Assembly (NCBI RefSeq): GCF_026571515.1
Contig: NW_026861275.1
Location: 1 to 64,000 of the forward strand
Origin: Ruditapes philippinarum
Lineage: Eukaryota
Direction: 5' to 3'
Length of the DNA: 64,000 nt
Positions within the stretch are counted from its first letter, which is position 1; each line of letters begins with the position of its first letter. Shown here piece after piece: positions 14,029-28,720 of the stretch. The notes under the pieces are model-generated. The model was not told the DNA's origin. It made no database searches and saw nothing but the letters and a program-made list of their open reading frames with translations. The translations under genes were made by a program, and so were the position numbers.

Positions 14029-17000
14029 ATGGCGGACATGGAAGTTAGCGAGGGTAAATTTTATTTTCTTTGTTATTTCAATGACATTTGGATTAATTTG
14101 TTAAGACGAGGTGTATTTGATCACGGTAAAGTTATTTTAATTACAAATATTGGTGTGATTCATTGTTGAATTCTAGGCTTCATATTCATACTTCCCTTCA
14201 TCTACACATGAAGCCGGTTAGGAAGAGTTGTTGGATATGTTCATTTATTGATCAGATCCGCGAGCCCTGACGGTACATACCTTTACGAAGAATTTTATTA
14301 TTTGGCTTCTGACTCTCCATATATAATTATGTCGCAGTTCACTCTAACGATATGGGAAAGGTGCTGCTAAGAGGTTCTGGGCCTTGAGCGTTGCTATAAA
14401 ATACAGAAATACGCACTCAGAAAATATTTATTATCAATGAATTTGAAGTCTGGCTCGCGCCATGAAAATCTTCAGTAGGAGTGCGCATGCATGAAGGTAC
14501 TTAGTGCAGAAATAGAATATTTAGAATTGAGGCCCGTACCAGTGGTTAGTACATACTTGTTAATAAATGAATGAATGAAGAAATGAATGAATGAGTAAAT
14601 GAATAAAAGGATGAATGAATGGGATATAGGAAAATGACACAAATATAGGACTTCACAAGATATATACAGTATCAAATACGACATACATGACATGGACATG
14701 TAAATAACATAATCTACGGTGACAAACAACATAGAACATTAACACATCAATATGACCCTGCGACAATTATAAATTCAATAAGTATCAAAAGTATATAAAT
14801 TCTTTTTTTGCTGATTGTCTATGATTAATTTGATTTTATCTGACTCCGACTCCAAGTCTAGAATCATCCTACACATATACAGTAATATGAAATTAGGCAA
14901 AGCCTATGAACGGGGAAGTCGTTAAAAAATTCCTTTCATTCTTTCCGTTTTAAAATTGTCATTCGGTATTACATGCACCGCTTCCGTTTTCACTCGGAAC
15001 ACTCGACGTTTATTATTTATCCGAAAAGTTGAGATTTGTTCCGTTATCGGAATACCCCGCCTTTTATCATTGAGTTACATTGTAAATGGCGGCGCTCGAC
15101 TAGAACTGACACTGAAAATTTCCTTGATAGGTATAGAATTCTAAATATTTTTTAATTGTTTTTTATTTATTTCTTTTAAATATACACGTGTAGTCTATAG
15201 CCGGGCAAGCCAAAGCCCGGACCCGCTTCGCGGGCCCGGTCTTTGACTTCCCCGTAATATTTTACAGATTGAGATTAAGATAGGAATTAAATGTTTTCTG
15301 TCAATTAACTTATGTGAAACTCTAAGTCTAACCAATGCCATCTCAACTTTTTGTGTTTACTCAATATTTTATCACTAAGACACTAACATCCATAAAGTTA
15401 CCATCTTTATAAGGCATGTTAACCAGTAATTCTGATTTATTTAATGTTCCTGTTTTAATATTGATGTTGACAAATTTACTATTGCTCACATTGTATGATT
15501 TAATGTGATAATAAATGTTGATTTTGTCTTTCAGGAAGCGAAGCGGGTAGTCCTAGAAGCCATCAATCTGGAAGTCCAATGAGGGAAGGGTCAGTATCTC
15601 CTGCCCATAGTGGTGCATCCGGCAGTCCAATGCATGAAGGATCAGTATCTCCTACACACAGTAAAGGTTCCAGAAGTCCTGACAGAGAGGGTTCAGTTTC
15701 CCCAGCTCATAGTGCTGCTTCAGGAGGTCCTGACAGAGAGGGTTCAGCGTCCCCTGGTCAGAGGTCAGGGAGCCCTCACAGAGAAGGATCTGCCTCACCA
15801 GCTCATAGTGCAAGGTCACATTCTCCGGACAAAAGTAGGTCAGCCTCGCCTAGGAGTGTCCACAGTGGTGGGGATGGCAGTCCTTCACACAGTAGAGAAG
15901 GATCAGCAAGTCCTGCAGGAAGTCATAGGTCTGGAGGATCTGCTAGAAGTCGATCTGGTAGCCCTGCTCACAGTCATAAATCTGCACGTAGTAGATCAGG
16001 AAGTCCTGCACATAGTGAAAGGTCTGCTCGTAGTAGATCTGGAAGCCCTGCACATAGTGAAAGGTCTGCCCGTAGTAGATCTGGAAGCCCTGCACATAGT
16101 GAAAGGTCTGCTCGTAGTAGATCTGGTAGCCCTGCACATAGTGAAAGGTCTGCTCGTAGCAGATCAGGGAGTCCTGCACACAGTGAAAGGTCTGCTCGTA
16201 GTAGATCTGGTAGCCCTGCACACAGTGAACGGTCTGGTAGTCCTGCACATAGTCATAGGTCTGCTCGCAGCAGATCTGGTAGCCCAGCACAAAGCAGAGA
16301 AGGTTCAGCTAGCCCAGCTGGTAGTCGTAGATCAAGAAGCCATTCAGGTAGCCCTGCTCGTAGTAGATCAGGAAGTCCAGCATCCAAAAGGTCAAGGTCA
16401 GGTTCGAGGAGTCCAGCAGGAAGCCACAGGAGCAGGTACCTTTGTTAGATCCCATTTTAGCCAAAAATATAGTTTATAAAACCATCTGATTGTTTATTTA
16501 ATATCCCCCTTTTATGCTTTAAATAATGTATAAAAGTATCACTGGTTAACTCTATGACATGAGGATGCAATTCTGTGATAATACTTGTTTTTATTTTATA
16601 GATCTGGGAGTCCATCAGAACATGGCAGTCAGAAGAAAGGTAGGTTATATTGTTGTCTGTAATGATATTCTATTTTTCAGAACATTTTGTAAACAGTTTA
16701 GATTTCAATTCATAATTTTTTTTCCACAATGATTGCTAAGCTACATCTATGTCCTACCTTATAAACTAGAAATCTTTTAATTAAAGTTCAATTTGTTTTT
16801 AGCTTCAATTTGCATGAGCACATATTACTCAACAGTGAGCTTAGACAAATGGCATAATTCTAAAAGCAGTATTTTTGGAGTTACGTCCCTTTTACTGTAG
16901 AATTTTTAACAGGCGATCATTATCACCGCATGCTCTTGTGTTTAATCTGGTATACAGTTGTAACTGAATATTTCAGATGGGCATGCTTCTGATTCAGATG

Positions 17001-20000
17001 ATTCTATAATAGGTCGTAAGAAAGTACCGTCAGAAGATGATGGGCTGTCTGACATCGAGGGTGGGGAACAAGTGCAAGGTATAACTCTATAATATAATAA
17101 TTCTGTTCTCTCTAATATTCTTTTCTCTTATATCTGTAAAATAATGATTGTAATTGTTAGACTTAAATGATAACACCTGTAACATTACTTGATATTTTGC
17201 ATGTAGCTTTCTTGGTGGAACTCTTCAGAAATTATATAAATTATGAACCTGAGTTAGAAATTGGCCACACCCACAGAACCGGAGTTAGAAATTGGCCACA
17301 CCAACAGGATTACTTGCTAAATATTGGAAAACATACCTTATCTCTTTGTTGGAAACTACAATTTCTAGAACTTAGATAATTTGCTTGTAGCATTGCCTAG
17401 TAGACCTCTACAGTTATATGAGTTATAAATGCTCCCACCCAGAAGGTCATTTAGTATAATTTTAGATAAAACATGTTTCTGACAAGTTTCATAAATAGGT
17501 TTCTTCTTGAATTGAGAGATTAATACTCAGTCAAATTTTCGTTTAGGCATATATTCTGGACTTTGTGGTGCTCTTGTAAATTGTTACATTGCTCTCAAAA
17601 TTCTTCTGGATTTTAGTGCAATGTTTGAAGAAAAATTTAAATGTACAAGTATAGTGTTTTGTTTTCAGCCACTGTGGATGATCTGTTTGGTGATGCTGAT
17701 GATATAAGTTCTGATGAAGAGGCTAAGAAAGATTTAGATAAAAAAGATGATGATAGAGGAGATGATGATGATGAAGGTAGAACTCAGGTAATAGAAACAG
17801 ACTATACATGTAAAAACCTGTACACAGACTAGAAGACAGTTTTACATTAACATGTTGTATCTTAAAGGAACTCCACTGAGGTCCAAAGGCCTAAAAACAA
17901 AAAAATCTGAATTTCTTAAATAAATTAGCTTTGGCACTTAAAACAGGAAAATATGCAAAACATTATTACCAAATATACTCAGACATAAATTGAAAATCAT
18001 ATTTGGTGCTATTCCTAGCTTGATTGGAGTGATAAGCATTGCAACATTTTCCAATTCTGGCTTGTTTTTCACAATTAAAATCATTATTTAGGGAAAATGG
18101 AAACAGCGAATGATCAGAAATTTTGTACACAAGTTATTGGTGTAACCTACATCGCATAGAACATTTATCTCGAAAAATTATTTCCCGAGTCCTGTCATGT
18201 CATAAAACATCAGTTGGAGTCCCTTTAAATTTAGACTAATTTAAATCTAAATACTTGGTTAACTTCATGCTTTTACTTGTTTTGTAAATTTTGCTTATAT
18301 TGTTATGAATCTTGGCAGAAAAATACATTGTGTGGCTACAAATAAATTAGCCATATTCAACGAAGATCTCTCTACAGTGAAACAATGTCCAGAAAACTTT
18401 GCTTTTTAAAATCTGGATTTAACTTTTCAATTTAATGCTGATAACTACTAAGTATGACTCACATTGATATATCAGTTATATTCATCAGTTTATTGGAAGT
18501 AATTGTTTTGAGCGCGTGGTTTTCTTAGATGAAAAAACAACAACAACAAAACAACAATGTTATGATGAACCTATGTCTGGTTCTGAATGTTTTATTAATA
18601 TTCAGTTTTTGTTTATGGATAAAAGCAATTAAATAAATTAATGGCCATTAAAAATACAGTATATGATATTGTATATTATGATTTTACCGGCATTTAATAG
18701 TGTACCATTTGCCATGATGCAGCTCAATTGTTTTGTTATTCATAGAAACCAATGATAGAAGGTTCGGATTTGTTATTTATAGAAACCAATGATAGAAGGT
18801 TCGGATTTGTTATTTATAGAAACCAATGATAGAAGGTTCGGATTTGTTATTTATAGAAACCAATGATAGAAGGTTTGGGTTTGTTATTTATAGAAACCAA
18901 TGATAGAAGGTTCGGATTTGTTATTTATAGAAACCAATGATAGAAGGTTCGGATTTGTTATTTATAGAAACCAATGATAGAAGGTTCGGATTTGTTATTT
19001 ATAGAAACCAATGATAGAAGGTTCAGATTTTTGTATTTATAGAAACCAATGATAGAAGGTTTGGATTTGTTATTTATAGAAACCAATGATAGAAGGTTCG
19101 GATTAGTTATTTATAGAAAACAATGATAGAAGGTTCGGATTTGTTATTTATAGAAACCAATGATAGAAGGTTCGGATGAAGAAAACCAGGAACCAGAAGA
19201 GGCTCCGGAAACGAGAATTGAAGTTGAAATCCCGAGAATCAAAACCAACCTCGGCAAAGCTGTACATTATGTTAAATTGCCCAACTTTCTCAGTGTGGAA
19301 ACAAGGTCAGTGTATCATGATGCTTGAGGTGCTAGTGAAATAATGAATATTTGATTACTTTGTTTGTTCTTTAAGTGTACATGTATATCTAAAAATTACT
19401 GTAATAAGATGCTTACTACTAAATTGTAATTTTTGTAATTTTATTGTCTTAGCAAACAGAAACTTAGGTTGACCTGAACATTGGAAGTTTGAACCCTGGA
19501 CAGCAGCTTATGTTTTTCTGTGACCATTTTGCTTAACAATAATATTTAGAAAAACTGTTTACCCACTGTTACAATATTGTATCCATGGTAATCTTGGTTG
19601 GTTTTAACTCTGGAAGTTACTCATAAATAAAAAAGCAAGGGACAACACATTTGTAACACGTAGGTTCTGCCTGCCAGAATATGACAAACATAATTAAAGT
19701 AGTATTTTGGTACTTTACCTTTGCAATCCTAAATATCTTAAATGGACTTGAACATCTTTCATTCTGGACAATACCATTAATCACTTTTAGGGAAAATTTT
19801 AAAATATATACTGACTGAATAGCGAGCAGTGCAAGCCATGATGTGACAGCACAAGTACAGATTTGGTGGCACATTCAAGATAATTACTGACTGAATACCA
19901 AACAGTGCAGACCATGAGCAGACGGCACAAATGTACAATCTGATCTTGGTCTGCACTGGTGTCATAGGTAGAATCTGTTGTTGCTAGCTGGCTAAGGGTT

Positions 20001-23000
20001 TTCAGGAACAAGCAAAAAACTAATAATAACTGTTATAAGATGTTTATATTTCTGGTAATTTCAGACCATTTGATTCTCAGACATATGAAGATGAGATAGA
20101 TGAAGATGAAGTGTTAGATGAAGAAGGTAGAACAAGAATGAAGCTAAAAGTATGTCTTAGACTTTACTGCTTTTGTTTAATATTTCATTAATATCGAATA
20201 ATCGGACGTAGATATATAGCAATGAAACTATCAGACATGTTCCCTGTAAACTTATATACACTTTGATGCTGTGTTTAAAGTGACATTATGCTCATATTTT
20301 CATAGTCAAGTTGAGCTGAGTTGACTTTATATTTCAAAAGATTGACTGTTAAAATGGTGTTTGACCAACAGGTGATATTGGAAAACTATCAGGATAAAAT
20401 TATAAATCTGCATAAAATATAAAAAGACTGCCCCACTCTTTTTATAAACTGAGTGTTAGAGGTAAATTCTAATAGATATTTACAGAAATTTTATTTGGAT
20501 CTGTGAATTGTTTATTGTTTATGGGAAGCAAATTATTAAATTAAAAGGAATTATGGCAAATTGAAAACTTATTTTGATATTCACCTGTTCACTCACTATA
20601 TATTCTTGGATGGGCATAATGTCACTTTAAGTAATGAAAATGTGAAATATTCGAAGGAGGCAATAACAATGGCAAGTGCATTGCTGTGAAATAAAGCATG
20701 GAGTCTGACTGTTTTTGTTTATATAGAAAAACTCCAATAGTGTTAGAATATGCAATATGTTTATTATTCTTCAGGTTGAAAACACAATAAGATGGCGGAC
20801 ATTGAAAGACGAGGAAGGAAATGATTTAAAAGATGAGGAAGGTAAACCAATGAGAGAAAGTAATGCCAGGGTTGTCAGATGGTCAGACGGAAGGTAAATG
20901 GACTGTCATAATATTTTAAATGTTTATTTGGAGGCTGTTTTTGCTCCTTAAATATTTTAGCAATTTTTATTTGGTGATATGTAAAGTTAGAATTTTGTTT
21001 TATTTATGAAAGATAAAGCCATCTAAAAAATTGAGGTTATGCATAGTATTGTTGTACTCAATATGGGTTGCATTGGTCTGTTGTTTTAGCTATGTATGTT
21101 AAGTATTAGTTATAAAGATTTTTGACAGGTTATATGGCCCAATGTAAACAGTTATGATCTTATTAAGCAAACAATCATTTATAAAAGGTCATACAAGCGA
21201 GTAAAAAATCTTTAGATAAATTTATGAAACAACAAAATTCCTTTATTTGTGGAAACAGAATTTCAAAGCAGCTGTCAATATAGATTATATTAACATCACA
21301 ATTATTCAATGAAAATTGATGTAACAAATACGTAGTATAATAAGCAGTTATAAATAACCTTGTTTTATAATTTCAGTATGTCACTACATCTAGGGGAGGA
21401 AATATTTGACATACACACTATGCCAATTCAAGGAGATTTTAACCATTTATTTGTACGACAAGGAACTGGTTTACAGGGACAGTCTATATTCAAAACTAAA
21501 CTTACATTTAGGTAAGTGTCATTTCTTATGATTCAAATGATTAAAAAACCCATTCTTTTTGTAATCCTGGCACAAATGTTTTTATGCCCCAACTTAATGG
21601 GTCGGAACATATGATATAGATTTCCACTGTCTTGTTTGTCTGTCAAGCTGACTGTAGACTGACTTTACAGTGAAATATGAAGGATATCTCACATTCTTAG
21701 TTTTGTAATAGACTTCTTCCTGTTTTGATTAAGAAAGTGTCCATTAATGATAGATTAAGGGATTTAAATAGCAAAATATTGAAAATAAAAAGTCACAAGT
21801 ATGTCAAGCAGGGTCACACTGCTTTGCCAGGTTTTGTATTTAAGATAAATGGCGAAGTGATTTAATATGAGGCGTCTATTAACGTAAACGTCTGTTTTGT
21901 ACGTTTACGTCATTTCCTTTATGTATCAACTGACGAAGCTAATAAAGCAAAACATGTATTATATCTAAACATGTATTGATATCTAAATTTGTGTTGGTTT
22001 TAATCTATTTGTCCTAAGTGATTTAATACAAATTCTCCTATAGACAGAAGTAAACTAAGTTTTGTTTGATATATATTTTCAGACCACATTCCACAGAATC
22101 ATTTACACATAGAAAGATGACCCTGTCATTAGCTGATAGATCTACAAAGAAACAGAAAGTTAAAATTCTACCAATATCAGGACATGATCCTGAATCACAA
22201 AGATCGGAAATGATCAAAGTAAGTATATTGTCTATTTGTTGATGTAAATGAAGACGGTATGAGCAATGGTAAAGAATATCTAACATGTGAGTCAATGAAT
22301 GAAGGTGTTAAATATACTTTACCATTTCTCTCATCACCTTTATCTATTGTCATGTACGAAATGCTGAACCAAAAACAAAGTACATGTGCAAGTGTAGCTT
22401 TTAAGGCACTTTTGGAGTGTACTGAAATAATGCATGGAAAGTCACCTGAGGTCTTATTTGAAAGTCGCCAAATGACCTCTATAGTGTTGGTCCAACATAA
22501 AACCCAACCAAAAAAAGAAAGTTTTGAGTTTCTTAATATCAAAATTGCATTATATTATAGTATAATCTCAGTAAGTAACTTTAACAACCTTGAAGCATTT
22601 CCAAAGCTATGTTAAAATTGTTCATTACATTACATATGTAAAATAATTTTGTTGAATGTAATTGTATCATATGAAGGCAGTAGGCAGAAATGTCGGGACT
22701 ACACAAAAAGTATAAATGAGCCGCGTCATGACAAAACCAACATAGTGTGTTTGCGACCAGCATGGATTCAGACCAGTCTGCGCATCCATGCAGTCTGATC
22801 AGGATCCATGCTGTTCGCTATCAATTTCTCTACTTGTTATAGGGTTTGTAAGCGAACAGCATGGATCCTGATCAGACTGCGCGGAGGCGCAGGCTGGTCT
22901 GGATCCATGCTGGTCGCAAACCCATTATGTTGATTTTGTCATGGCGCGGCTCAAATTATTTCTGAATTTCCTTATCATGTATAGAAAGAGGAAGAAAGAT

Positions 23001-26000
23001 TACGGGCATCAACGAGGTTAGAGAGTCAGAAACGTCGTGTACGTGAGCGGTCACATGCGAAGGGTCTCAGTCACAGTTATCTCGAGGGTTACGAGGATGA
23101 GGAGGAGGAAGGAGGAATTTCATTATCAGCCATTAAAAATAAATATAAACGTGGAGATAAAAGAGGTAATTTCATTATCAGCCATTAAAAATAAATATAA
23201 ACGTGGCGATAAAAGAGGTAATTTCATTATCAGCCATTAAAAATAAATATAAACGTGGCGATAAAAGAGGTAATTTCATTATCAGCCATTAAAAATAAAT
23301 ATAAACGTGGAGATAAAAGAGGTAATTTCATTATCAGCCATTAAAAACAAATATAAACGTGGAGATAAAAGAGGTAATTTCATTATCAGCCATTAAAAAT
23401 AAATATAAACGTGGCGATAAAAGAGGTAATTTCATTATCAGCCATTAAAAACAAATATAAACGTGGAGATAAAAGAGGTAATTTCATTATCAGCCATTAA
23501 AAATAAATATAAACATGGAGATAAAAGAGGTAATTTCATTATCAGCCATTAAAAATAAATATACACATGGCGATAAGAGGTAATTTTATTATCAGCCATT
23601 AAAAATAAATATAAACGTGGAGATATTAAAAATAAATATAAACGTGGAGATAAAAGAGGTAATTTCATTATCAGCCATTAAAAACAAATATAAACGTGGA
23701 GATAAAAGAGGTAATTTCATTATCAGCCATTAAAAACAAATATAAACGTGGAGATAAAAGAGGTAATTTCATTATCAGCCATTAAAAACAAATATAAACG
23801 TGGTGATAAAAGAGGTAAGTTCATTATCAGCCATTAAAAACAAATATAAACGTGGAGATAAAAGAGGTAATTTCATTATCAGCCATTAAAAACAAATATA
23901 AACGTGGAGATAAAAGAGGTAATTTCATTATCAGCCATTAAAAACAAATATAAACGTGGTGATAAAAGAGGTAAGTTCATTATCAGCCATTAAAAACAAA
24001 TATAAACGTGGTGATAAAAGAGGTAATTTCATTATCAGCCATTAAAAATAAATATAAACGTGGAGATAAAAGAGGTAATTTCATTATCAGCCATTAAAAA
24101 TAAATATACACATGGCGATAAGAGGTAATTTTATTATCAGCCATTAAAAATAAATATAAACGTGGCGATAAAAGAGGTAATTTTATTATCAGACATTAAA
24201 AATAAATATAAATGTGGAGATATTAAAAATAAATATAAACGTGGAGATAAAAGAGGTAATTTCATTATCAGCCATTAAAAACAAATATAAACATGGCGAT
24301 AAAAGAGGTAATTTCATTATCAGCCAAAAAAAATAAATATAAACGTGGCGATAAAAGAGGTAAGTTCATTATCAGCCATTAAAACTAATGTAAACAACCC
24401 CAAAGATTTTGCAATGTCCTCTTTTCTGCCATTTTGGGGGCAGGGGACAGGGAATGTGCCTTGATGAGTTTCTGCCACACCGATTTTCAAAGATATAAGG
24501 TCTCTGAGACCCGTTATTGAACTTAAAATGTAACTGTATATATATGTTATATTTTAGATCGTCCTCATATATATTCATCAGACAGTGATGAAGGAGGTTA
24601 TGATTCAGAACAAGAAGATACTGGTGCCAAACGATTAATGAAAGCTAAAAAAGTCATCAGCGATGATGAGGTAAATATTTTACTACGTGTATATGTCTAT
24701 AAATTTCACATGTTTATAACTGATTCCCCTTCTTGTAATTGCAGAACAGAACAGTATATGATTATGTTTGCTGTAAGATCTTCAGGCAATGCAAATATTT
24801 TGTACTGTTATACATCATTTAGAATGAGCGATATTTTAGAGTTGATCAGAACGCTGTTGTAAATTGTTCTAAGGATATATCATTCCATCGTTTTGTTTTT
24901 ATACTCCCACTTTGATAGTCTGTCATTTGCAGAGAAATAAGTTATTACTGTTTACACTGGTTTAGTTAGCCAGGAATGCTGGTTAGGTAGAATGAGCGCC
25001 AAATTATGACAAAAAAGTTTTTTTAAGATCAGCTTAAAATACAGATAAACATTCAAGATAAACCCACCTTTATGTTAGTGGGCTGCAAGCCAGTGTTTTT
25101 TGCTTGTTTGTTTGTTTGTCTGTCTGTCTGAGGGAGAAAAAAAAGACTAACCTTGACTGCTAGTATAGAGCCAGGCCAGCCTGGACTTTTATGCTGTCTC
25201 ATCAAGCTCTATACTGGTGACTGACTTAGATTTTAATTTTCATCTTGATATCCCCTAAATTAATAAAACATTTGTAAATGGAAGTCTGTGTAAGAAATGT
25301 AGCAGATTGTGGGTTAAATTACGTTGTTAAAATTTGAAAATCATTACATATTATCAATCAAAAAAATTGTATTTATAAAATAATTATTATTATGGAATAA
25401 GTTGTTATTATTATGGAATAAGTTGTTATTATTTAATTTTACCTATGAAGTATGGTAGTATATCAGTCAAATATATTTCATATTAGTAAAAAATAAATAT
25501 GAAATATAAATATGAAAGTGGCGGAGTCAAAACTCATATTTATTTAAAGGACTTCTTGGACCATTTTTTTAAAAAAATCTGATAAATAAAAAACAACTTT
25601 TTGTTGAATTCTGTTTTGAAAACTAGAATGATAGAAAATGTTCTAATGTCTAACTAAGAACATAACTCCGAACACCAATATCTTTAATTCAGTTATTAAC
25701 GCTGTACAGACGTTTAAAGAGTTGTTTACGTGACGTCACAATGTAGCGTCAAATATAATGTGCAAAACAAGACGCAATATTATATTACTGCTCGCTGTAC
25801 AATTGCAGTTGCGTAGCATGCAATTGAGTCTGTCATCATTTTTCTCTGATAATGAAATTAAATAAAAAAGTTATTTTTTCGATTTACGTGAAATATGGTA
25901 TATATTTAAGAAATAATATATCCCAAACTGTGATTTTATCGCTCAATAACATCACTGTTTGGAGTTCGGATGCGAGGAATTATATCACGAGGGCGTAGCC

Positions 26001-26610
26001 CGAGTGATATAATGATGCGCATCCGAACGACAAACAGTGATGTTATCCAGCGATAAAATCACCGATTTGGATATATTATTTCGATTCTAACACAACATAA
26101 ACAAAAAAATGCTGCCGTACCAGCTATTAAGCAAAATTGCGCCTGATTTGTTTCCGTACTTATTGTCAGCGCGTCGGATTTTATAGTGGTTACGTCACAT
26201 GTATAATGATTACGTCACATGTCTAAACATAGAGCGTCAAACAGTGACTCTATTGCATAATAACACACACTTTCGGTTCTTCTATGTTCAATAGGGAAAA
26301 TGCGGGTCGTGTTAGAATTTCACTCAACATGATAAAATGCCACATATTATATTATAAATATATTCCATATTTCACTCAAACGAAAAATATCCTCTTATTA
26401 TTATTATGGAATAAGTTGTTATTATTATGGAATAACTTGAAATTTCAGGATTCTGAAACTGAGACGTTACCTAAGAAGAAGAAAGCTCGGGTTGTTGAAA
26501 GTAGTGATGAAGAGGAGGGCGGGGCCAAGGGTAGTGAAGATGAGGCGGGTGGAGCTATGGACACAGGGGGTAATGCCAGTGGTGGAGGGGGTGGTAGTGA
26601 CTCAGACTGA
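14029..26610 (+). CDS. LEO1: RNA polymerase-associated protein LEO1 (PAF1 complex), 13 coding exons
   Basis: Exons, all GT-AG with consistent phases: 14029-14053, 15535-16435, 16602-16639, 16977-17078, 17669-17787, 19154-19305, 20065-20149, 20775-20893, 21377-21511, 22083-22218, 22985-23165, 24558-24670, 26449-26610. Leo1 motifs: [132 protein letters not shown]. Confidence 0.96.
15945..16290 (+). repeat. Coding 42-bp (14-aa) tandem repeat [14 protein letters not shown] in LEO1 exon 2
   Basis: CATAGTGAAAGG recurs at 16011, 16053 and onward (period 42); about 7-8 units within a wider RS/SP-rich exon. Confidence 0.9.
17866..18224. mobile_element. Kolobok-like non-autonomous element (AGG..CCT, TTAA TSD)
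   Basis: TTAA|AGGAACTCCA…TGGAGTCCCT|TTAA; homologous copies at 40777-41123 and 50289-50599. Confidence 0.75.
18731..19177 (+). repeat. 37-bp tandem array (12 units) containing the LEO1 exon 6 splice acceptor
   Basis: Unit TTTGTTATTTATAG|AAACCAATGATAGAAGGTTCGGA; acceptor AGs end at 18745, 18782 … 19116, 19153. Confidence 0.95.
20279..20626. mobile_element. TTAA-flanked MITE (Kolobok-like)
   Basis: TTAA|AGTGACATTATGC.CA…TGGGCATAATGTCACT|TTAA. Confidence 0.7.
22718..22952. mobile_element. Palindromic MITE, Sola-like (GAG..CTC, 4-bp TSD)
   Basis: AAAT|GAGCCGCGTCATGACAAAACCAACAT…ATGTTGATTTTGTCATGGCGCGGCTC|AAAT; almost fully self-complementary; copies at 39849 and 55239. Confidence 0.8.
23117..24384 (+). 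repeat. 52-bp tandem array (~24 units) containing the LEO1 exon 11 3' end and splice donor
   Basis: Unit GTAATTTCATTATCAGCCATTAAAAA(T/C)AAATATAAACGTGG(A/C/T)GATAAAAGAG; 23 AG|GTAA sites counted from 23166 to 24360. Confidence 0.95.
25908..26318. mobile_element. Long palindromic non-autonomous element (possibly Crypton-like)
   Basis: Imperfect stem of ~80 bp centred on CACGAGGGCGTAGCCCGAGTG (~25990-26005), plus a second inverted pair ATTCTAACAC/GTGTTAGAAT. Confidence 0.5.
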
Positions 26611-26901
26611 AAATGATAAAAAGTGTTCTGAAGTATGGAAGTGTATAATAGTGACAAGTGCTTGTCTTGTGTAGCAGTAACACAAGGGGTTTAAGAGTGG
26701 TGGGATAAGATGCAGTTTTTGGTTACGTTGTCATATGCTGAAGAATTTACTGTATAATTTAGCAACATCATATAGCTGCCTGCAGGATTACAAAACTACA
26801 CACTACAACAGTCACTTTTTATAACTGTAATGTTTTTGTTTGTTTTAGTGAAAAAATTCATGATGACAAATGAAGTTGATTGATTTGTCATGTTTTGATG
26901 T

Positions 26902-27006: not shown

Positions 27007-28720
27007 TTATACCCCCGCACAACAAAGTTGTAAGGGGGGTATACTGGAATCAGGTTGTCCGGCTGTACGTCGGTTTCTTCTTGTCCGCCCAATAACTAAA
27101 GATTCCTTTGACCCTTAGTCTTCATATTTGGCATGGAGGTTAGTCATGATAAGTAGATGACCCCTATTGATTTTGAGGTCACCAGGTCAAAGGTCAAGGT
27201 CACAGGGGCCTTGACTTCAAAAAGCTTGTCTGCCCAATAACTTAATATTCCTTTGACCCATAGTCTTCATATTTGACATTGAGGTTAGTCATGATCTAGT
27301 AGATGACCCCTATTGACTTTGAGGTCACCAGGTCAAAGGTCAAGGTCACAGGGGCCTTGACTTCAAAAAGCTTGGCCACTCAGATTCCTTTGACCCACAG
27401 TCTTCATATTTGGCATGGAGGTTAGTCATGATTGGTAGATGACCCCTATTGACTTTGAGGTCACCAGGTCAAAGGTCAAGGTCACAGGGGCCTCTACTTC
27501 AAAAAGCTTGTCCGCCAAATAACTTAATATTCCTTTGACCCACAGTCTTCATATTTGGCATGGAGGTTAGTCATGATTAGTAGATGACCCCTATTTACTT
27601 TGAGATCACCAGGTCAAAGGTAAAGGTCACAGGGGCCTTGACTTCAAAAAGCTTGTCTGCCCAATAACTTAATATTCCTTTGACCCATAGTCTTCATATT
27701 TGACATTGAGGTTAGTCATGATTAGTAGATGACCCCTATTGACTTTGAGGTCACCAGGTCAAAGGTCAAGGTCACAGGGGCCTTGACTTCAAAAAGCTTG
27801 GCCACTCAGATTCCTTTGACCCACAGTCTTCATATTTGGCATGGAGGTTAGTCATGATTGGTAGATGACCCCTATTGACTTTGAGGTCACCAGGTCAAAG
27901 GTCAAGGTCACAGGGGCCTCTACTTCAAAAAGCTTGTCCGCCAAATAACTTAATATTCCTTTGACCCACAGTCTTCATATTTGGCATGGAGGTTAGTCAT
28001 GATTAGTAGATGACCCCTATTTACTTTGAGATCACCAGGTCAAAGGTAAAGGTCACAGGGGCCTTGACTTCAAAAAGCTTGTCTGCCCAATAACTTAATA
28101 TTCCTTTGACCCATAGTCTTCATATTTGGCATGGAGGTTAGTCATGATTAGTTGATGACCCCTTTTGATTTTGAGGTCAAAGGTAAAGGTCACAGGGGCC
28201 TTGACTTCAAAAAGCTTGTCCGCCCAATAACTGTAGATTCCTTTGACCCACAGTCTTCATATTTGGAATTGAGGTTAGTCATGATTAGTAGATGACCCCT
28301 TTTGATTTTGAGGTCACTGGATCAAAGGTCAAGGTCACAAACACTTTGACTTCAAAAAGTTTGTCCACCCATTAACTTACGATTCCTTTGACCCTCAGTC
28401 TTCATATTTGGCATGGATGTTGATCATGACCATAAGGTGACCCCTATTGACTTTGAGGTCACTGGGTCAAAGGTCAAGGTCACAGGGACCTTGACAAAAA
28501 AAAGCTTTTCTTCTCAATTGCTAAAGAATGCCTGTTTGCAGTGTATTGATTTTGACATTTTCGCATTTGAAGCATGTAGAATACATAACTTAGCATTGCA
28601 ATGGCTTAGTAACCTCAGATTTGGCAGGGAGGTTGTCCCTGAGCTCTAAATGGCCACTGTTGATTCTGACAAAGTGGTATGCGGGGGTATTCAAGCCATG
28701 ATAGTGGCAGTTCAAGTTTT
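27007..28720 (+). mobile_element. Helentron/HINE-like non-autonomous element carrying a ~145-bp tandem array (10 units)
   Basis: Subterminal inverted pair ATACCCCCGCA / TGCGGGGGTAT, 3' hairpin GCCA.GATAGTGGC and a T-run. GACCCCT anchors at 27159, 27305, 27441, 27586, 27731, 27867, 28012, 28157, 28294, 28439. Confidence 0.75.

Follow-up and report, generated by a model that had tools for sequence, protein, structure and literature searches.

The intron of the LEO1 gene of the bivalve Ruditapes philippinarum opens with a tandem array of its own exon–intron boundary. Within the window (the whole stretch analysed here, 64,000 nucleotides of contig NW_026861275.1, whose numbering is used throughout), about 23 copies of a 52-bp unit span 23112–24395, with 89–95% matches in Tandem Repeats Finder. 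The sequence comparisons described below demonstrate the anatomy of this array, its origin from the exon, its confinement to a single locus and the continuity of orthologous proteins across the splice junction. In our view, it is probably a "mirage"-type minisatellite that spans the exon–intron boundary, a tolerated by-product of repeat instability rather than a device, with decoy splice sites that would be silent.

Anatomy of the array

The features on which the argument rests are as follows (all on the + strand; a slash marks the splice junction).

22985–23165: LEO1 coding exon, contains KEEERLRAS; 181 nt, phase 1 at its end
23093–23116: purine-rich run of GAG and GAA, coding for EDEEEEGG; abuts the first monomer and lies outside the repeat
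23112–24395: 52-bp minisatellite; made up of a single exonic monomer, 22 full monomers in the intron and a last, truncated one
23166–23171: authentic 5′ splice site GAG/GTAATT; 7 of 9 matches to MAG/GTRAGT
23530–23658: block of variant units, the first of 50 nt (K>T, R>H, 2 nt deleted) and the second of 79 nt
23815–23820: decoy donor GAG/GTAAGT; matches the consensus at 8 of 9 positions and lies 649 nt 3′ of the authentic donor
24396–24557: non-repetitive 3′ remainder of the intron, ending in the real acceptor …tgttatattttag/AT
24558–24672: next LEO1 coding exon, 37 residues

Tandem Repeats Finder divides the array into three rows of period 52 and also reports rows of period 27, 79 and 131.

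23112–23625: 9.9 copies, 95% matches, score 937
23625–24222: 11.5 copies, 95% matches, score 1056
24222–24395: 3.4 copies, 89% matches, score 285

The first monomer consists of the last 49 bases of the coding exon (23117–23165) together with GTA. An earlier note on this DNA had divided every unit into 16 + 36 nt, which holds for 18 of the 22 full intronic units (52 nt each) but not for the two of 50 nt (units 9 and 19, each with a 2-nt deletion) or the two of 79 nt (units 10 and 21, each with an internal 27-nt duplication). The last monomer (24360–24395) is truncated to 36 nt and is the most diverged of all. The variant block at 23530–23658 recurs at 24075–24255, with unit 19 identical in sequence to unit 9, and this recurrence of a 50 + 79-nt block shows that the array has grown by duplication of multi-unit blocks. 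As for the source of the unit, it encodes the conserved LEO1 motif AIKNKYK, and all eight of its matches in the species' own 1.4-Gb genome, in a search that skips very common words, fall inside this array. The unit is derived from LEO1 itself and is not a dispersed repeat; the array is repeat-born, as had been proposed, from the exon end with its donor.

The array carries 22 decoy donors and 22 CAG pseudo-acceptors in its full units. With the authentic site, the donors of the form GGTAA[G/T]T number 23, from 23166 to 24360, and our unit table, with 20 GTAATT and three GTAAGT, confirms both this count and the positions given earlier for the latter (23815 and, identical to it, 23971 and 24360). 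These three are stronger than the productive GTAATT at 23166, as had been claimed, in that they match the consensus at eight positions instead of seven. AATAAA hexamers are as abundant as had been noted: 15 lie within 23117–24400, each in a donor-bearing unit, the first (23138) being inside the coding exon. LEO1 also contains a second array, of 12 copies of a 37-bp unit at an acceptor (18732–19177).

The array might instead be shorter in the real genome, or absent from it, as an artefact of assembly. DNA contigs from X1 cover only part of the array bins, with 23101–23300 and 23701–24100 reading 0. Contigs built from short-read graphs, however, break up in such repeats, and those from X1 do lie on 23301–23700 and 24101–24500, with a summed word depth of up to 24 against 3–5 for single-copy sequence. 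Raw RNA reads from a different study (X21) touch all six array bins. Finally, ordered private variants and a repeated 50 + 79-nt block are not expected of an artefact, and we regard this explanation as extremely unlikely. As regards allelic variation in length, the assembly has no second haplotype contig of the locus.

The splice junction and orthologous proteins

Joining 23165 to 24558 restores both the split codon and the orthologous protein, and it is this restored codon, together with the orthologue match, that defines the exon boundary at 23165. Residues 274–335 of the bivalve orthologue P0154 match 22976–23167 and residues 335–372 match 24557–24670, which places the two exons back to back. 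In seven of the eight bivalve LEO1 sequences (P0002 and P0151–P0156) a single AIKN-YK motif is followed directly by (D/E)R..IYSSDS, and none of these seven, which cover the junction, contains a repeated block; the eighth, P0221 (a Mya model), is without the next exon. The predicted junction 23165>24558 is thus backed by the bivalve orthologues, whose protein is continuous without an insert.

No retrocopy of LEO1 was found, P0154 matching only eight exons, all on this contig. A word-index search with three queries (the exon, residues 245–350 of P0002 and residues 545–655 of P0155) did not find the species' own protein and returned relatives only, among which Dreissena polymorpha and Mya arenaria are the nearest with a name. 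In exon-level open reading frames from relatives (P0001, P0003–P0014, P0250, P0251, P0019, P0033 and P0049), the intron starts do not show the read-through to NFIISH and stop. Relatives' introns that do not begin with the same array start offer weak evidence that the array may be young or lineage-specific.

Coding potential of the units

One alternative is that the 36-nt pieces are cassette micro-exons. The donor at 23166 would then be joined to a unit that is not its neighbour, at the CAG, and that unit's donor to 24558, which would put one or more 12-residue blocks into the C-terminal region of LEO1. Several features are in keeping with such a use. The acceptor-like CAG and the GT stand in phase 1-1, as the earlier note had observed, and they do so in every unit. 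With the split codons completed, inclusion adds exactly the 12-residue peptide without a frameshift in 16 of the 22 intronic units, so that the claim of an in-frame insert stands for these; elsewhere it fails, two units being frameshifted and others mutated (R>H in two, I>K in one), and two units give 21 residues. The three commonest unit variants are all synonymous.

This last point could be taken for constraint. Among the decoy coding parts, on the other hand, there are three synonymous against six non-synonymous types of change, apart from a frameshift and the 27-nt duplication; the synonymous share of sites is ~18% by hand estimate, and three of nine is not significantly more. We therefore rejected selection on these parts, and the frameshifted and otherwise mutated units are what is expected without constraint. 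The synonymous character of the commonest variants probably stems from exchange with the exon copy, which is under selection, and not from a coding constraint on the units. In fact, a synonymous T>C at 23140 (AAT>AAC) is present in the exon in 21 of 21 X24 reads and two of three X23 reads, and the same variant marks 10 of the 18 intronic units of 52 nt. That the exon shares a variant with the array hints that sequence is exchanged between the exon, which is under selection, and its copies in the intron.

The geometry of the array bears on the micro-exons as well. Adjacent 36-nt pieces lie only 16 nt apart, a gap too short for an intron, so neighbouring units cannot yield a simple ladder of +36n products, and a spacing of at least 68 nt would be needed. 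In the 20 nt before AG, pseudo-acceptors contain 7–9 pyrimidines, against 11–13 in three real LEO1 acceptors. A branch-point test with YTNAY at 15–45 nt is uninformative, because the motif is missing from the pseudo-acceptors but also from all real acceptors tested except one of the three, where it lies at 40 nt. With, in addition, none of the seven junction-covering orthologues carrying a repeated block and the RNA depth given below, we judge it very unlikely that the pieces serve as micro-exons.

Use of a later donor has a different outcome. Read-through of the first donor meets TAA after GNFIISH, as predicted earlier and as seen in the open reading frame at 23037–23240, and the 52-nt unit breaks the reading frame, so the array does not form an in-frame ladder of donors of the IFI6 type. 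The exon end with three units folds at −38.5 kcal/mol (z −3.2) by pairing between neighbouring units; RNA structure does not explain the choice of donor, because this pairing engages the authentic donor and the decoys alike. Rfam gave just three sub-threshold, miRNA-like chance matches.

RNA evidence

RNA reads of 150 nt from three runs (X21, X23 and X24) were followed as depth in 200-nt bins over 20701–26700, which takes in the last exon and four exons upstream; useful LEO1 depth comes from one of them, X24, and steady-state RNA under-reports substrates of nonsense-mediated decay (NMD). LEO1 exons stand at ~20–30x in X24, with exon bins at 14.0 (20701–20900) and 18.4 (24501–24700). The six array bins (23301–24500) read 0.12, 0, 0.16, 0.2, 0 and 0, no more than other intron bins; they are all 0 in X23 and lie at 0.09–1.14 in X21, whose own exons reach just ~2x. 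Array sequence in steady-state RNA is thus not above the intron background in any of the three runs, which speaks against the suggested use of the copies as variable inserts. In letters, the 1,200-nt array collects 96 in all in X24, less than one read, against ~3,680 on the 115-nt next exon. The bin at 23101–23300 has a depth of 7.6; its 65 exonic bases, at the 21–33 reads seen over positions 23002–23140, predict 6.8–10.7, and since the exon alone explains this bin there is no excess depth past 23165. Products containing array sequence are bounded at roughly 10% or less, which is not a strict bound, as tissue-specific or NMD-cleared forms fall outside it; mapping may also be ambiguous for a 36-nt piece that equally fits the exon end. 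The best-supported splice joints, above 1039 others, all come from repeats at 22743–22915 and 25905–26358, and any LEO1 joints fall among those 1039. A ~245-bp inverted-repeat element at 22712–22956 reaches 25,000x in X21, and further repeats lie at 25500–26400; these repeats dominate the joints, indels and loose ends, and the evidence for LEO1 comes from depth and single-nucleotide variants.

The same data bear on polyadenylation. The array could be a hazard of premature cleavage and polyadenylation, kept in check by U1 binding within it, or a source of truncated LEO1 transcripts; 15 AATAAA hexamers, each in a unit that also bears a donor, would suit either. One of these hexamers, however, is simply the Lys and Asn codons of the coding exon and reads AACAAA in X24. 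No pile of molecule beginnings or ends is listed in the array, standard RNA-seq being a weak test for 3′ ends, and X24 shows no read-through depth beyond 23165. The intronic polyadenylation cluster that had been proposed thus finds no sign here, and we give this reading next to no weight.

Proposed origin and choice of donor

We favour the minisatellite reading, under which a 52-bp segment, comprising the exon's final 49 coding bases and the start of the intron, would have been duplicated, the likely founding cause being slippage between GAGG(T)A motifs 52 nt apart. Slippage or unequal exchange, multi-unit blocks included, could then have amplified it to ~23 copies. Copies 3′ of the first monomer lie in the intron and would be removed with it, the spliceosome taking the most upstream donor, 23166, and leaving the 22 downstream decoys silent. 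This donor may win for three reasons: it is transcribed first, it closes the 181-nt exon, and it alone neighbours the purine-rich run at 23093–23116, a putative exonic enhancer near the first donor only. Any leak to a later donor would add 52n nt and meet TAA after seven codons, and would presumably be cleared by NMD.

Comparison with known systems

The closest parallel is the 37-bp VNTR in intron 7 (IVS7) of human F7, as described by Borensztajn et al. (2006; PMC1557585). There too, the first monomer spans the exon–intron boundary, identical decoys follow the authentic donor, and splicing from a later one mostly breaks the frame. In that account, minigenes showed that the most upstream of 5–9 identical donors is used alone; decoys did not compete at consensus values of up to 91, but did so when the consensus was perfect. 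The two arrays differ in scale, F7 having 5–9 copies of 37 bp with four exonic bases per unit as described and LEO1 ~23 copies of 52 bp with 36–49. Unlike F7 in that description, LEO1 has an acceptor-like CAG in each unit and three decoys that are closer to consensus than the authentic site. These three count against our reading, although they match the consensus at eight of nine positions, not nine. Furthermore, the choice of donor was established by minigenes for F7, and for LEO1 we infer it from RNA depth and orthologues alone.

Human IFI6 (6-16) provides the other precedent. The same source describes an authentic donor in intron 2 followed by 25 decoys, a number close to that of LEO1, of which the two proximal ones are used constitutively; this makes it the nearest precedent for variable inserts from a donor array. 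In LEO1, on the other hand, later donors lead to a frameshift and a stop, and in-frame inserts would need the pseudo-acceptors. The array might act as a valve of unproductive splicing, in which use of decoys, especially GTAAGT, leads to TAA and decay, and the level of LEO1 is tuned by how long the array is or which units it contains. The decoys are exact or better copies of the donor, any later one gives a stop after seven codons, the two most proximal decoys are reported as used in CBS as well as IFI6 (PMC1557585), and such products, if cleared by NMD, would escape notice in steady-state RNA. Against this, depth in X24 is not raised immediately 3′ of the first donor, F7 decoys below perfect consensus are described as never used (PMC1557585), and there is no sign of regulation; we consider a valve unlikely. 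More speculative, and decidedly improbable, is a polymorphic VNTR of decoy donors, whose length or GTAAGT units would set how much LEO1 pre-mRNA is spliced unproductively, perhaps with rare forms in some tissue that carry basic 12-residue inserts, and whose decoys would be kept "fresh" by exchange with the exon.

Among invertebrates, the amphioxus "mirages" (Adh3, the globins BflGb6/9, TnC and PGBD5) are tandem duplications of the 5′ or 3′ edge of an exon–intron boundary, with AG and GT in their units, and are reported to leave regular splicing undisturbed (PMC3087553, PMC3902484). Both points of structure are shared by the LEO1 array, as is concerted evolution with diverged edge units; the sources allow for both kinds of edge in one amphioxus gene, and LEO1 likewise bears one array at a donor and another at an acceptor. 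In common with F7 and the mirages, the array has head-to-tail units, at 52 bp within the 10–160 bp typical of the kind, a boundary-spanning first monomer and a unit derived from the host gene. The host phylum differs, this array being in a bivalve mollusc, and our literature search found no paper describing mirages in bivalves.

Implications

Minisatellites at exon boundaries are already known from amphioxus and human, LMNB2 and PDGF being further human examples, and the LEO1 array is a further case, in a bivalve. LEO1 is an essential transcription-elongation gene. Here, an essential single-copy gene keeps one authentic donor in front of 22 exact-or-better copies, with 12 acceptor copies at another exon, and so offers a test case, provided by nature in a non-mammal, of how 5′ splice sites are chosen. 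Gene prediction, read mapping and assembly can all be led astray by arrays of this sort, and any exchange between exon and array could be measured with population data. Should splicing be confined to the first donor, the rule of position seen in human F7 would extend to a mollusc.

The LEO1 gene and its probable productive junction

The exons flanking the array are those of the gene for LEO1, a component of the PAF1 complex. With single LEO1 exons as queries, a scan of all 1.84 billion representatives returned, as did word-index searches, LEO1 proteins carrying Pfam PF04004; among the named matches, those from two bivalves, Dreissena polymorpha and Mya arenaria, were nearest. Across the 1.4-Gb genome, the transcript-like orthologue P0154 finds only eight exons, all of them on this contig; LEO1 is thus single-copy, without a retrocopy. 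Residues 274–335 and 335–372 of P0154 map back to back onto the two array-flanking exons, and 7/8 bivalve LEO1 sequences (P0002 and P0151–P0156) carry a single AIKN-YK motif with (D/E)R..IYSSDS directly after it. Because these seven proteins, P0154 among them, run straight across, 23165>24558 is very probably the productive junction, as the earlier note had assumed. In the eighth sequence, P0221 (a Mya arenaria 'LEO1-like protein'), the exon orthologous to 22985–23165 leads to the last exon in another frame, and the orthologue of 24558–24672 is missing, reflecting either mis-annotation or an exon-skipped form in this relative. Two further repeats accompany the gene, namely a coding 42-bp repeat (15939–16236, seven copies, 88% matches) that gives 14-residue blocks in the serine/arginine-rich N-terminal exon, and a nested tandem array of 145/282/427 bp (27080–28518, score 2319) just 3′ of the last exon.

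22985–23165: LEO1 exon (...KEEERLRAS...), ending in phase 1
23117–23165: exonic monomer of the array (n = 1)
24360–24395: truncated, most diverged monomer of the array, followed by unique intron
24558–24672: next LEO1 exon, continuing the protein

Anatomy and authenticity of the array

Sequence inspection and Tandem Repeats Finder place a 52-bp tandem array at 23112–24395. Cutting at each GGTAA[G/T]T yields 22 full intronic monomers, 18 of them 52 nt long, two 50 nt and two 79 nt. The donor is present in 23 copies, of which 20 read GTAATT and three GTAAGT (23815, 23971 and 24360), exactly as counted and located in the earlier note, although the layout of 16 plus 36 nt that it ascribed to each unit holds for 18/22 and fails in the remaining four. 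AATAAA occurs 15 times in the array region, the first within the LEO1 exon.

Tandem Repeats Finder rows for the 52-bp array
Row; copies; matches; score
1; 9.9; 95%; 937
2; 11.5; 95%; 1056
3 (3′ end, more diverged); 3.4; 89%; 285

DNA contigs (X1) cover 23301–23700 and 24101–24500 at summed word depths of up to 24, against 3–5 for single-copy pieces nearby, and leave the other array bins empty; raw RNA reads from a different study (X21) fall in 6/6 array bins. The X1 word depth, the X21 reads and the private variants that the units carry in an ordered pattern argue against an assembly artefact; the copy number is that of the assembly.

The array in RNA

Four raw-read RNA runs were found alongside many DNA runs, and runs X21, X23 and X24 were aligned to 20701–26700 together with X1. 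In X24, exon-bearing bins reach 14.0 (20701–20900) and 18.4 (24501–24700), while the six array bins stand at 0.12, 0, 0.16, 0.2, 0 and 0, with other intron bins at 0 to 0.64; in letters, this is 96 on 1,200 nt of array versus ~3,680 on the 115-nt next exon, the placement of reads from the 36-nt pieces being uncertain in such counts as these are identical to the exon end. The depth of 7.6 in bin 23101–23300 is explained by its 65 exonic bases, which at 21–33 reads (positions 23002–23140) suffice to give 6.8–10.7. X23 has 0 in 6/6 array bins, and X21 has 0.09–1.14, with its own LEO1 exons at only ~2x and introns at 0.16–0.4. Steady-state RNA of the three runs, with useful depth only in X24, thus contains no array sequence above intron background, and in X24 neither read-through past the first donor nor any sign of RNA ends inside the array, at a detection limit that misses products below ~10% and under-represents NMD substrates. 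Across 20701–26700, no place with many molecule begins or ends is reported in X21, X23 or X24. The use of the copies envisaged earlier, as micro-exons, NMD isoforms or polyadenylation sites, is therefore not borne out, with array bins at intron background and no pile of ends.

The best-supported read joints of this region, ranking above 1039 others that include those of LEO1, come from repeats at 25500–26400 and from a ~245-bp MITE-like element with long terminal inverted repeats (22712–22956), which stops 28 nt short of the array-bearing exon's acceptor. The element attracts ~25,000x reads in X21 and a summed word depth of 1.29 million in the DNA contigs (single copy, 3–5). Its loose ends consist of AT-rich sequences unrelated to one another, as expected of a dispersed family with very many copies.

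Candidate micro-exons, possible leakage and the probable choice of the first donor

Cassette use of the 36-nt pieces would be in frame, as the earlier note held, and the exact peptide is kept in 16/22 units. Several features nevertheless speak against it. First, neighbouring pieces lie only 16 nt apart, so that only non-adjacent units (at least 68 nt) could be joined. Second, the pseudo-acceptors have 7–9 pyrimidines in the 20 nt before AG, compared with 11–13 in three real LEO1 acceptors (the branch motif does not discriminate between them, as two of these three real acceptors, like the pseudo-acceptors, have none at usable distance). Third, the units include two with a frameshift, two with R>H and one with I>K, and one 63-nt piece has A>D and R>C. 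Finally, three synonymous against six non-synonymous change types, plus two indels, show no synonymous excess, since ~18% of sites are synonymous by hand estimate.

Among cases that have been studied, human F7 comes nearest: a 37-bp minisatellite beginning on the exon 7–IVS7 boundary places 4–8 identical decoys after the authentic donor (PMC1557585). In fifty minigene constructs these decoys were functional, yet only the most upstream donor was used; competition came only from perfect-consensus decoys, and those with consensus values as high as 91 failed to compete. The same source lists IFI6 (with 25 decoys, of which the two proximal are used), CBS, LMNB2 and PDGF. In LEO1, the authentic donor (GAG/GTAATT at 23165/23166) matches the consensus at 7/9 positions and the GTAAGT decoys at 8/9, because their position −3 is G; the nearest of these lies 649 nt away. 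Only the first donor closes the 181-nt exon and has a purine-rich stretch (23093–23116) 50 nt upstream, which we infer may be a splicing enhancer. RNA structure was rejected as a separator: the exon end plus three units is predicted to fold through inter-unit pairing (z −3.2), with the authentic donor paired like the decoys. An inert exon-boundary minisatellite with use of the first donor is the best explanation, and a likely one. The main live alternative, a small leak to decoy donors that is cleared by NMD, appears unlikely.

Origin, growth and possible exchange

All eight own-genome matches of the unit (8/8) lie within the array, in a search whose tool skips very common words, and the unit contains conserved LEO1 codons; it was therefore born from the exon end and the first intron bases, in agreement with the repeat-born origin first suggested. 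To its left, the first monomer is flanked by ...GGAGGA, which is similar to the unit end (...AGAGGTA), and slippage between these GAGG(T)A motifs, spaced by 52 nt, could have given rise to the first duplication. The array contains two instances of a 50-nt unit with a 79-nt unit directly after it (23530–23658 and 24075–24255), and unit 19 is identical to unit 9; the recurring pair means that the array also grew by multi-unit block duplication. The truncated, most diverged 3′ unit is as in amphioxus, where edge units are described as escaping homogenisation (PMC3087553).

X24 differs from the assembly in all reads at six exonic positions (23140, 23002, 23005, 23047, 24565 and 24661). At 23140, T>C (AAT>AAC, synonymous) is seen in the exon copy, which is thus itself polymorphic, in 21/21 reads of X24 and 2/3 of X23, and AAT>AAC marks 10/18 52-nt intronic units. 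The exon copy would admit only synonymous changes, and exchange with the array would spread them; the three synonymous variants are the commonest among the units, likely for this reason. The sharing of the 23140 variant hints at such exchange.

Comparison with known boundary arrays

Minisatellites whose first or last monomer spans an exon–intron boundary were named mirages in amphioxus, where they are found at either edge of exons, 5′ or 3′, with AG/GT signals and leave splicing undisturbed (PMC3087553 and PMC3902484). The LEO1 gene studied here likewise has both kinds, since the donor array is joined by an acceptor array (18732–19177) of 12 copies, whose 37-bp unit comprises the intron end ...TTATTTATAG and the first 23 exon bases, and whose last copy continues into the real LEO1 exon. 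In a GC-rich other organism, the 147-aa predicted protein P0103 has the LEO1 motif region twice in tandem, in the order motif region, ~20 odd residues, motif region again and ...IYSSESD; from its sequence, this looks like the same LEO1 boundary, duplicated in an unrelated genome and read through by the gene caller. No description of such arrays in bivalves was found in the literature searched, which covered a minority of subscription journals. The R. philippinarum array is a further instance of the exon-boundary minisatellite already known from F7 and amphioxus.
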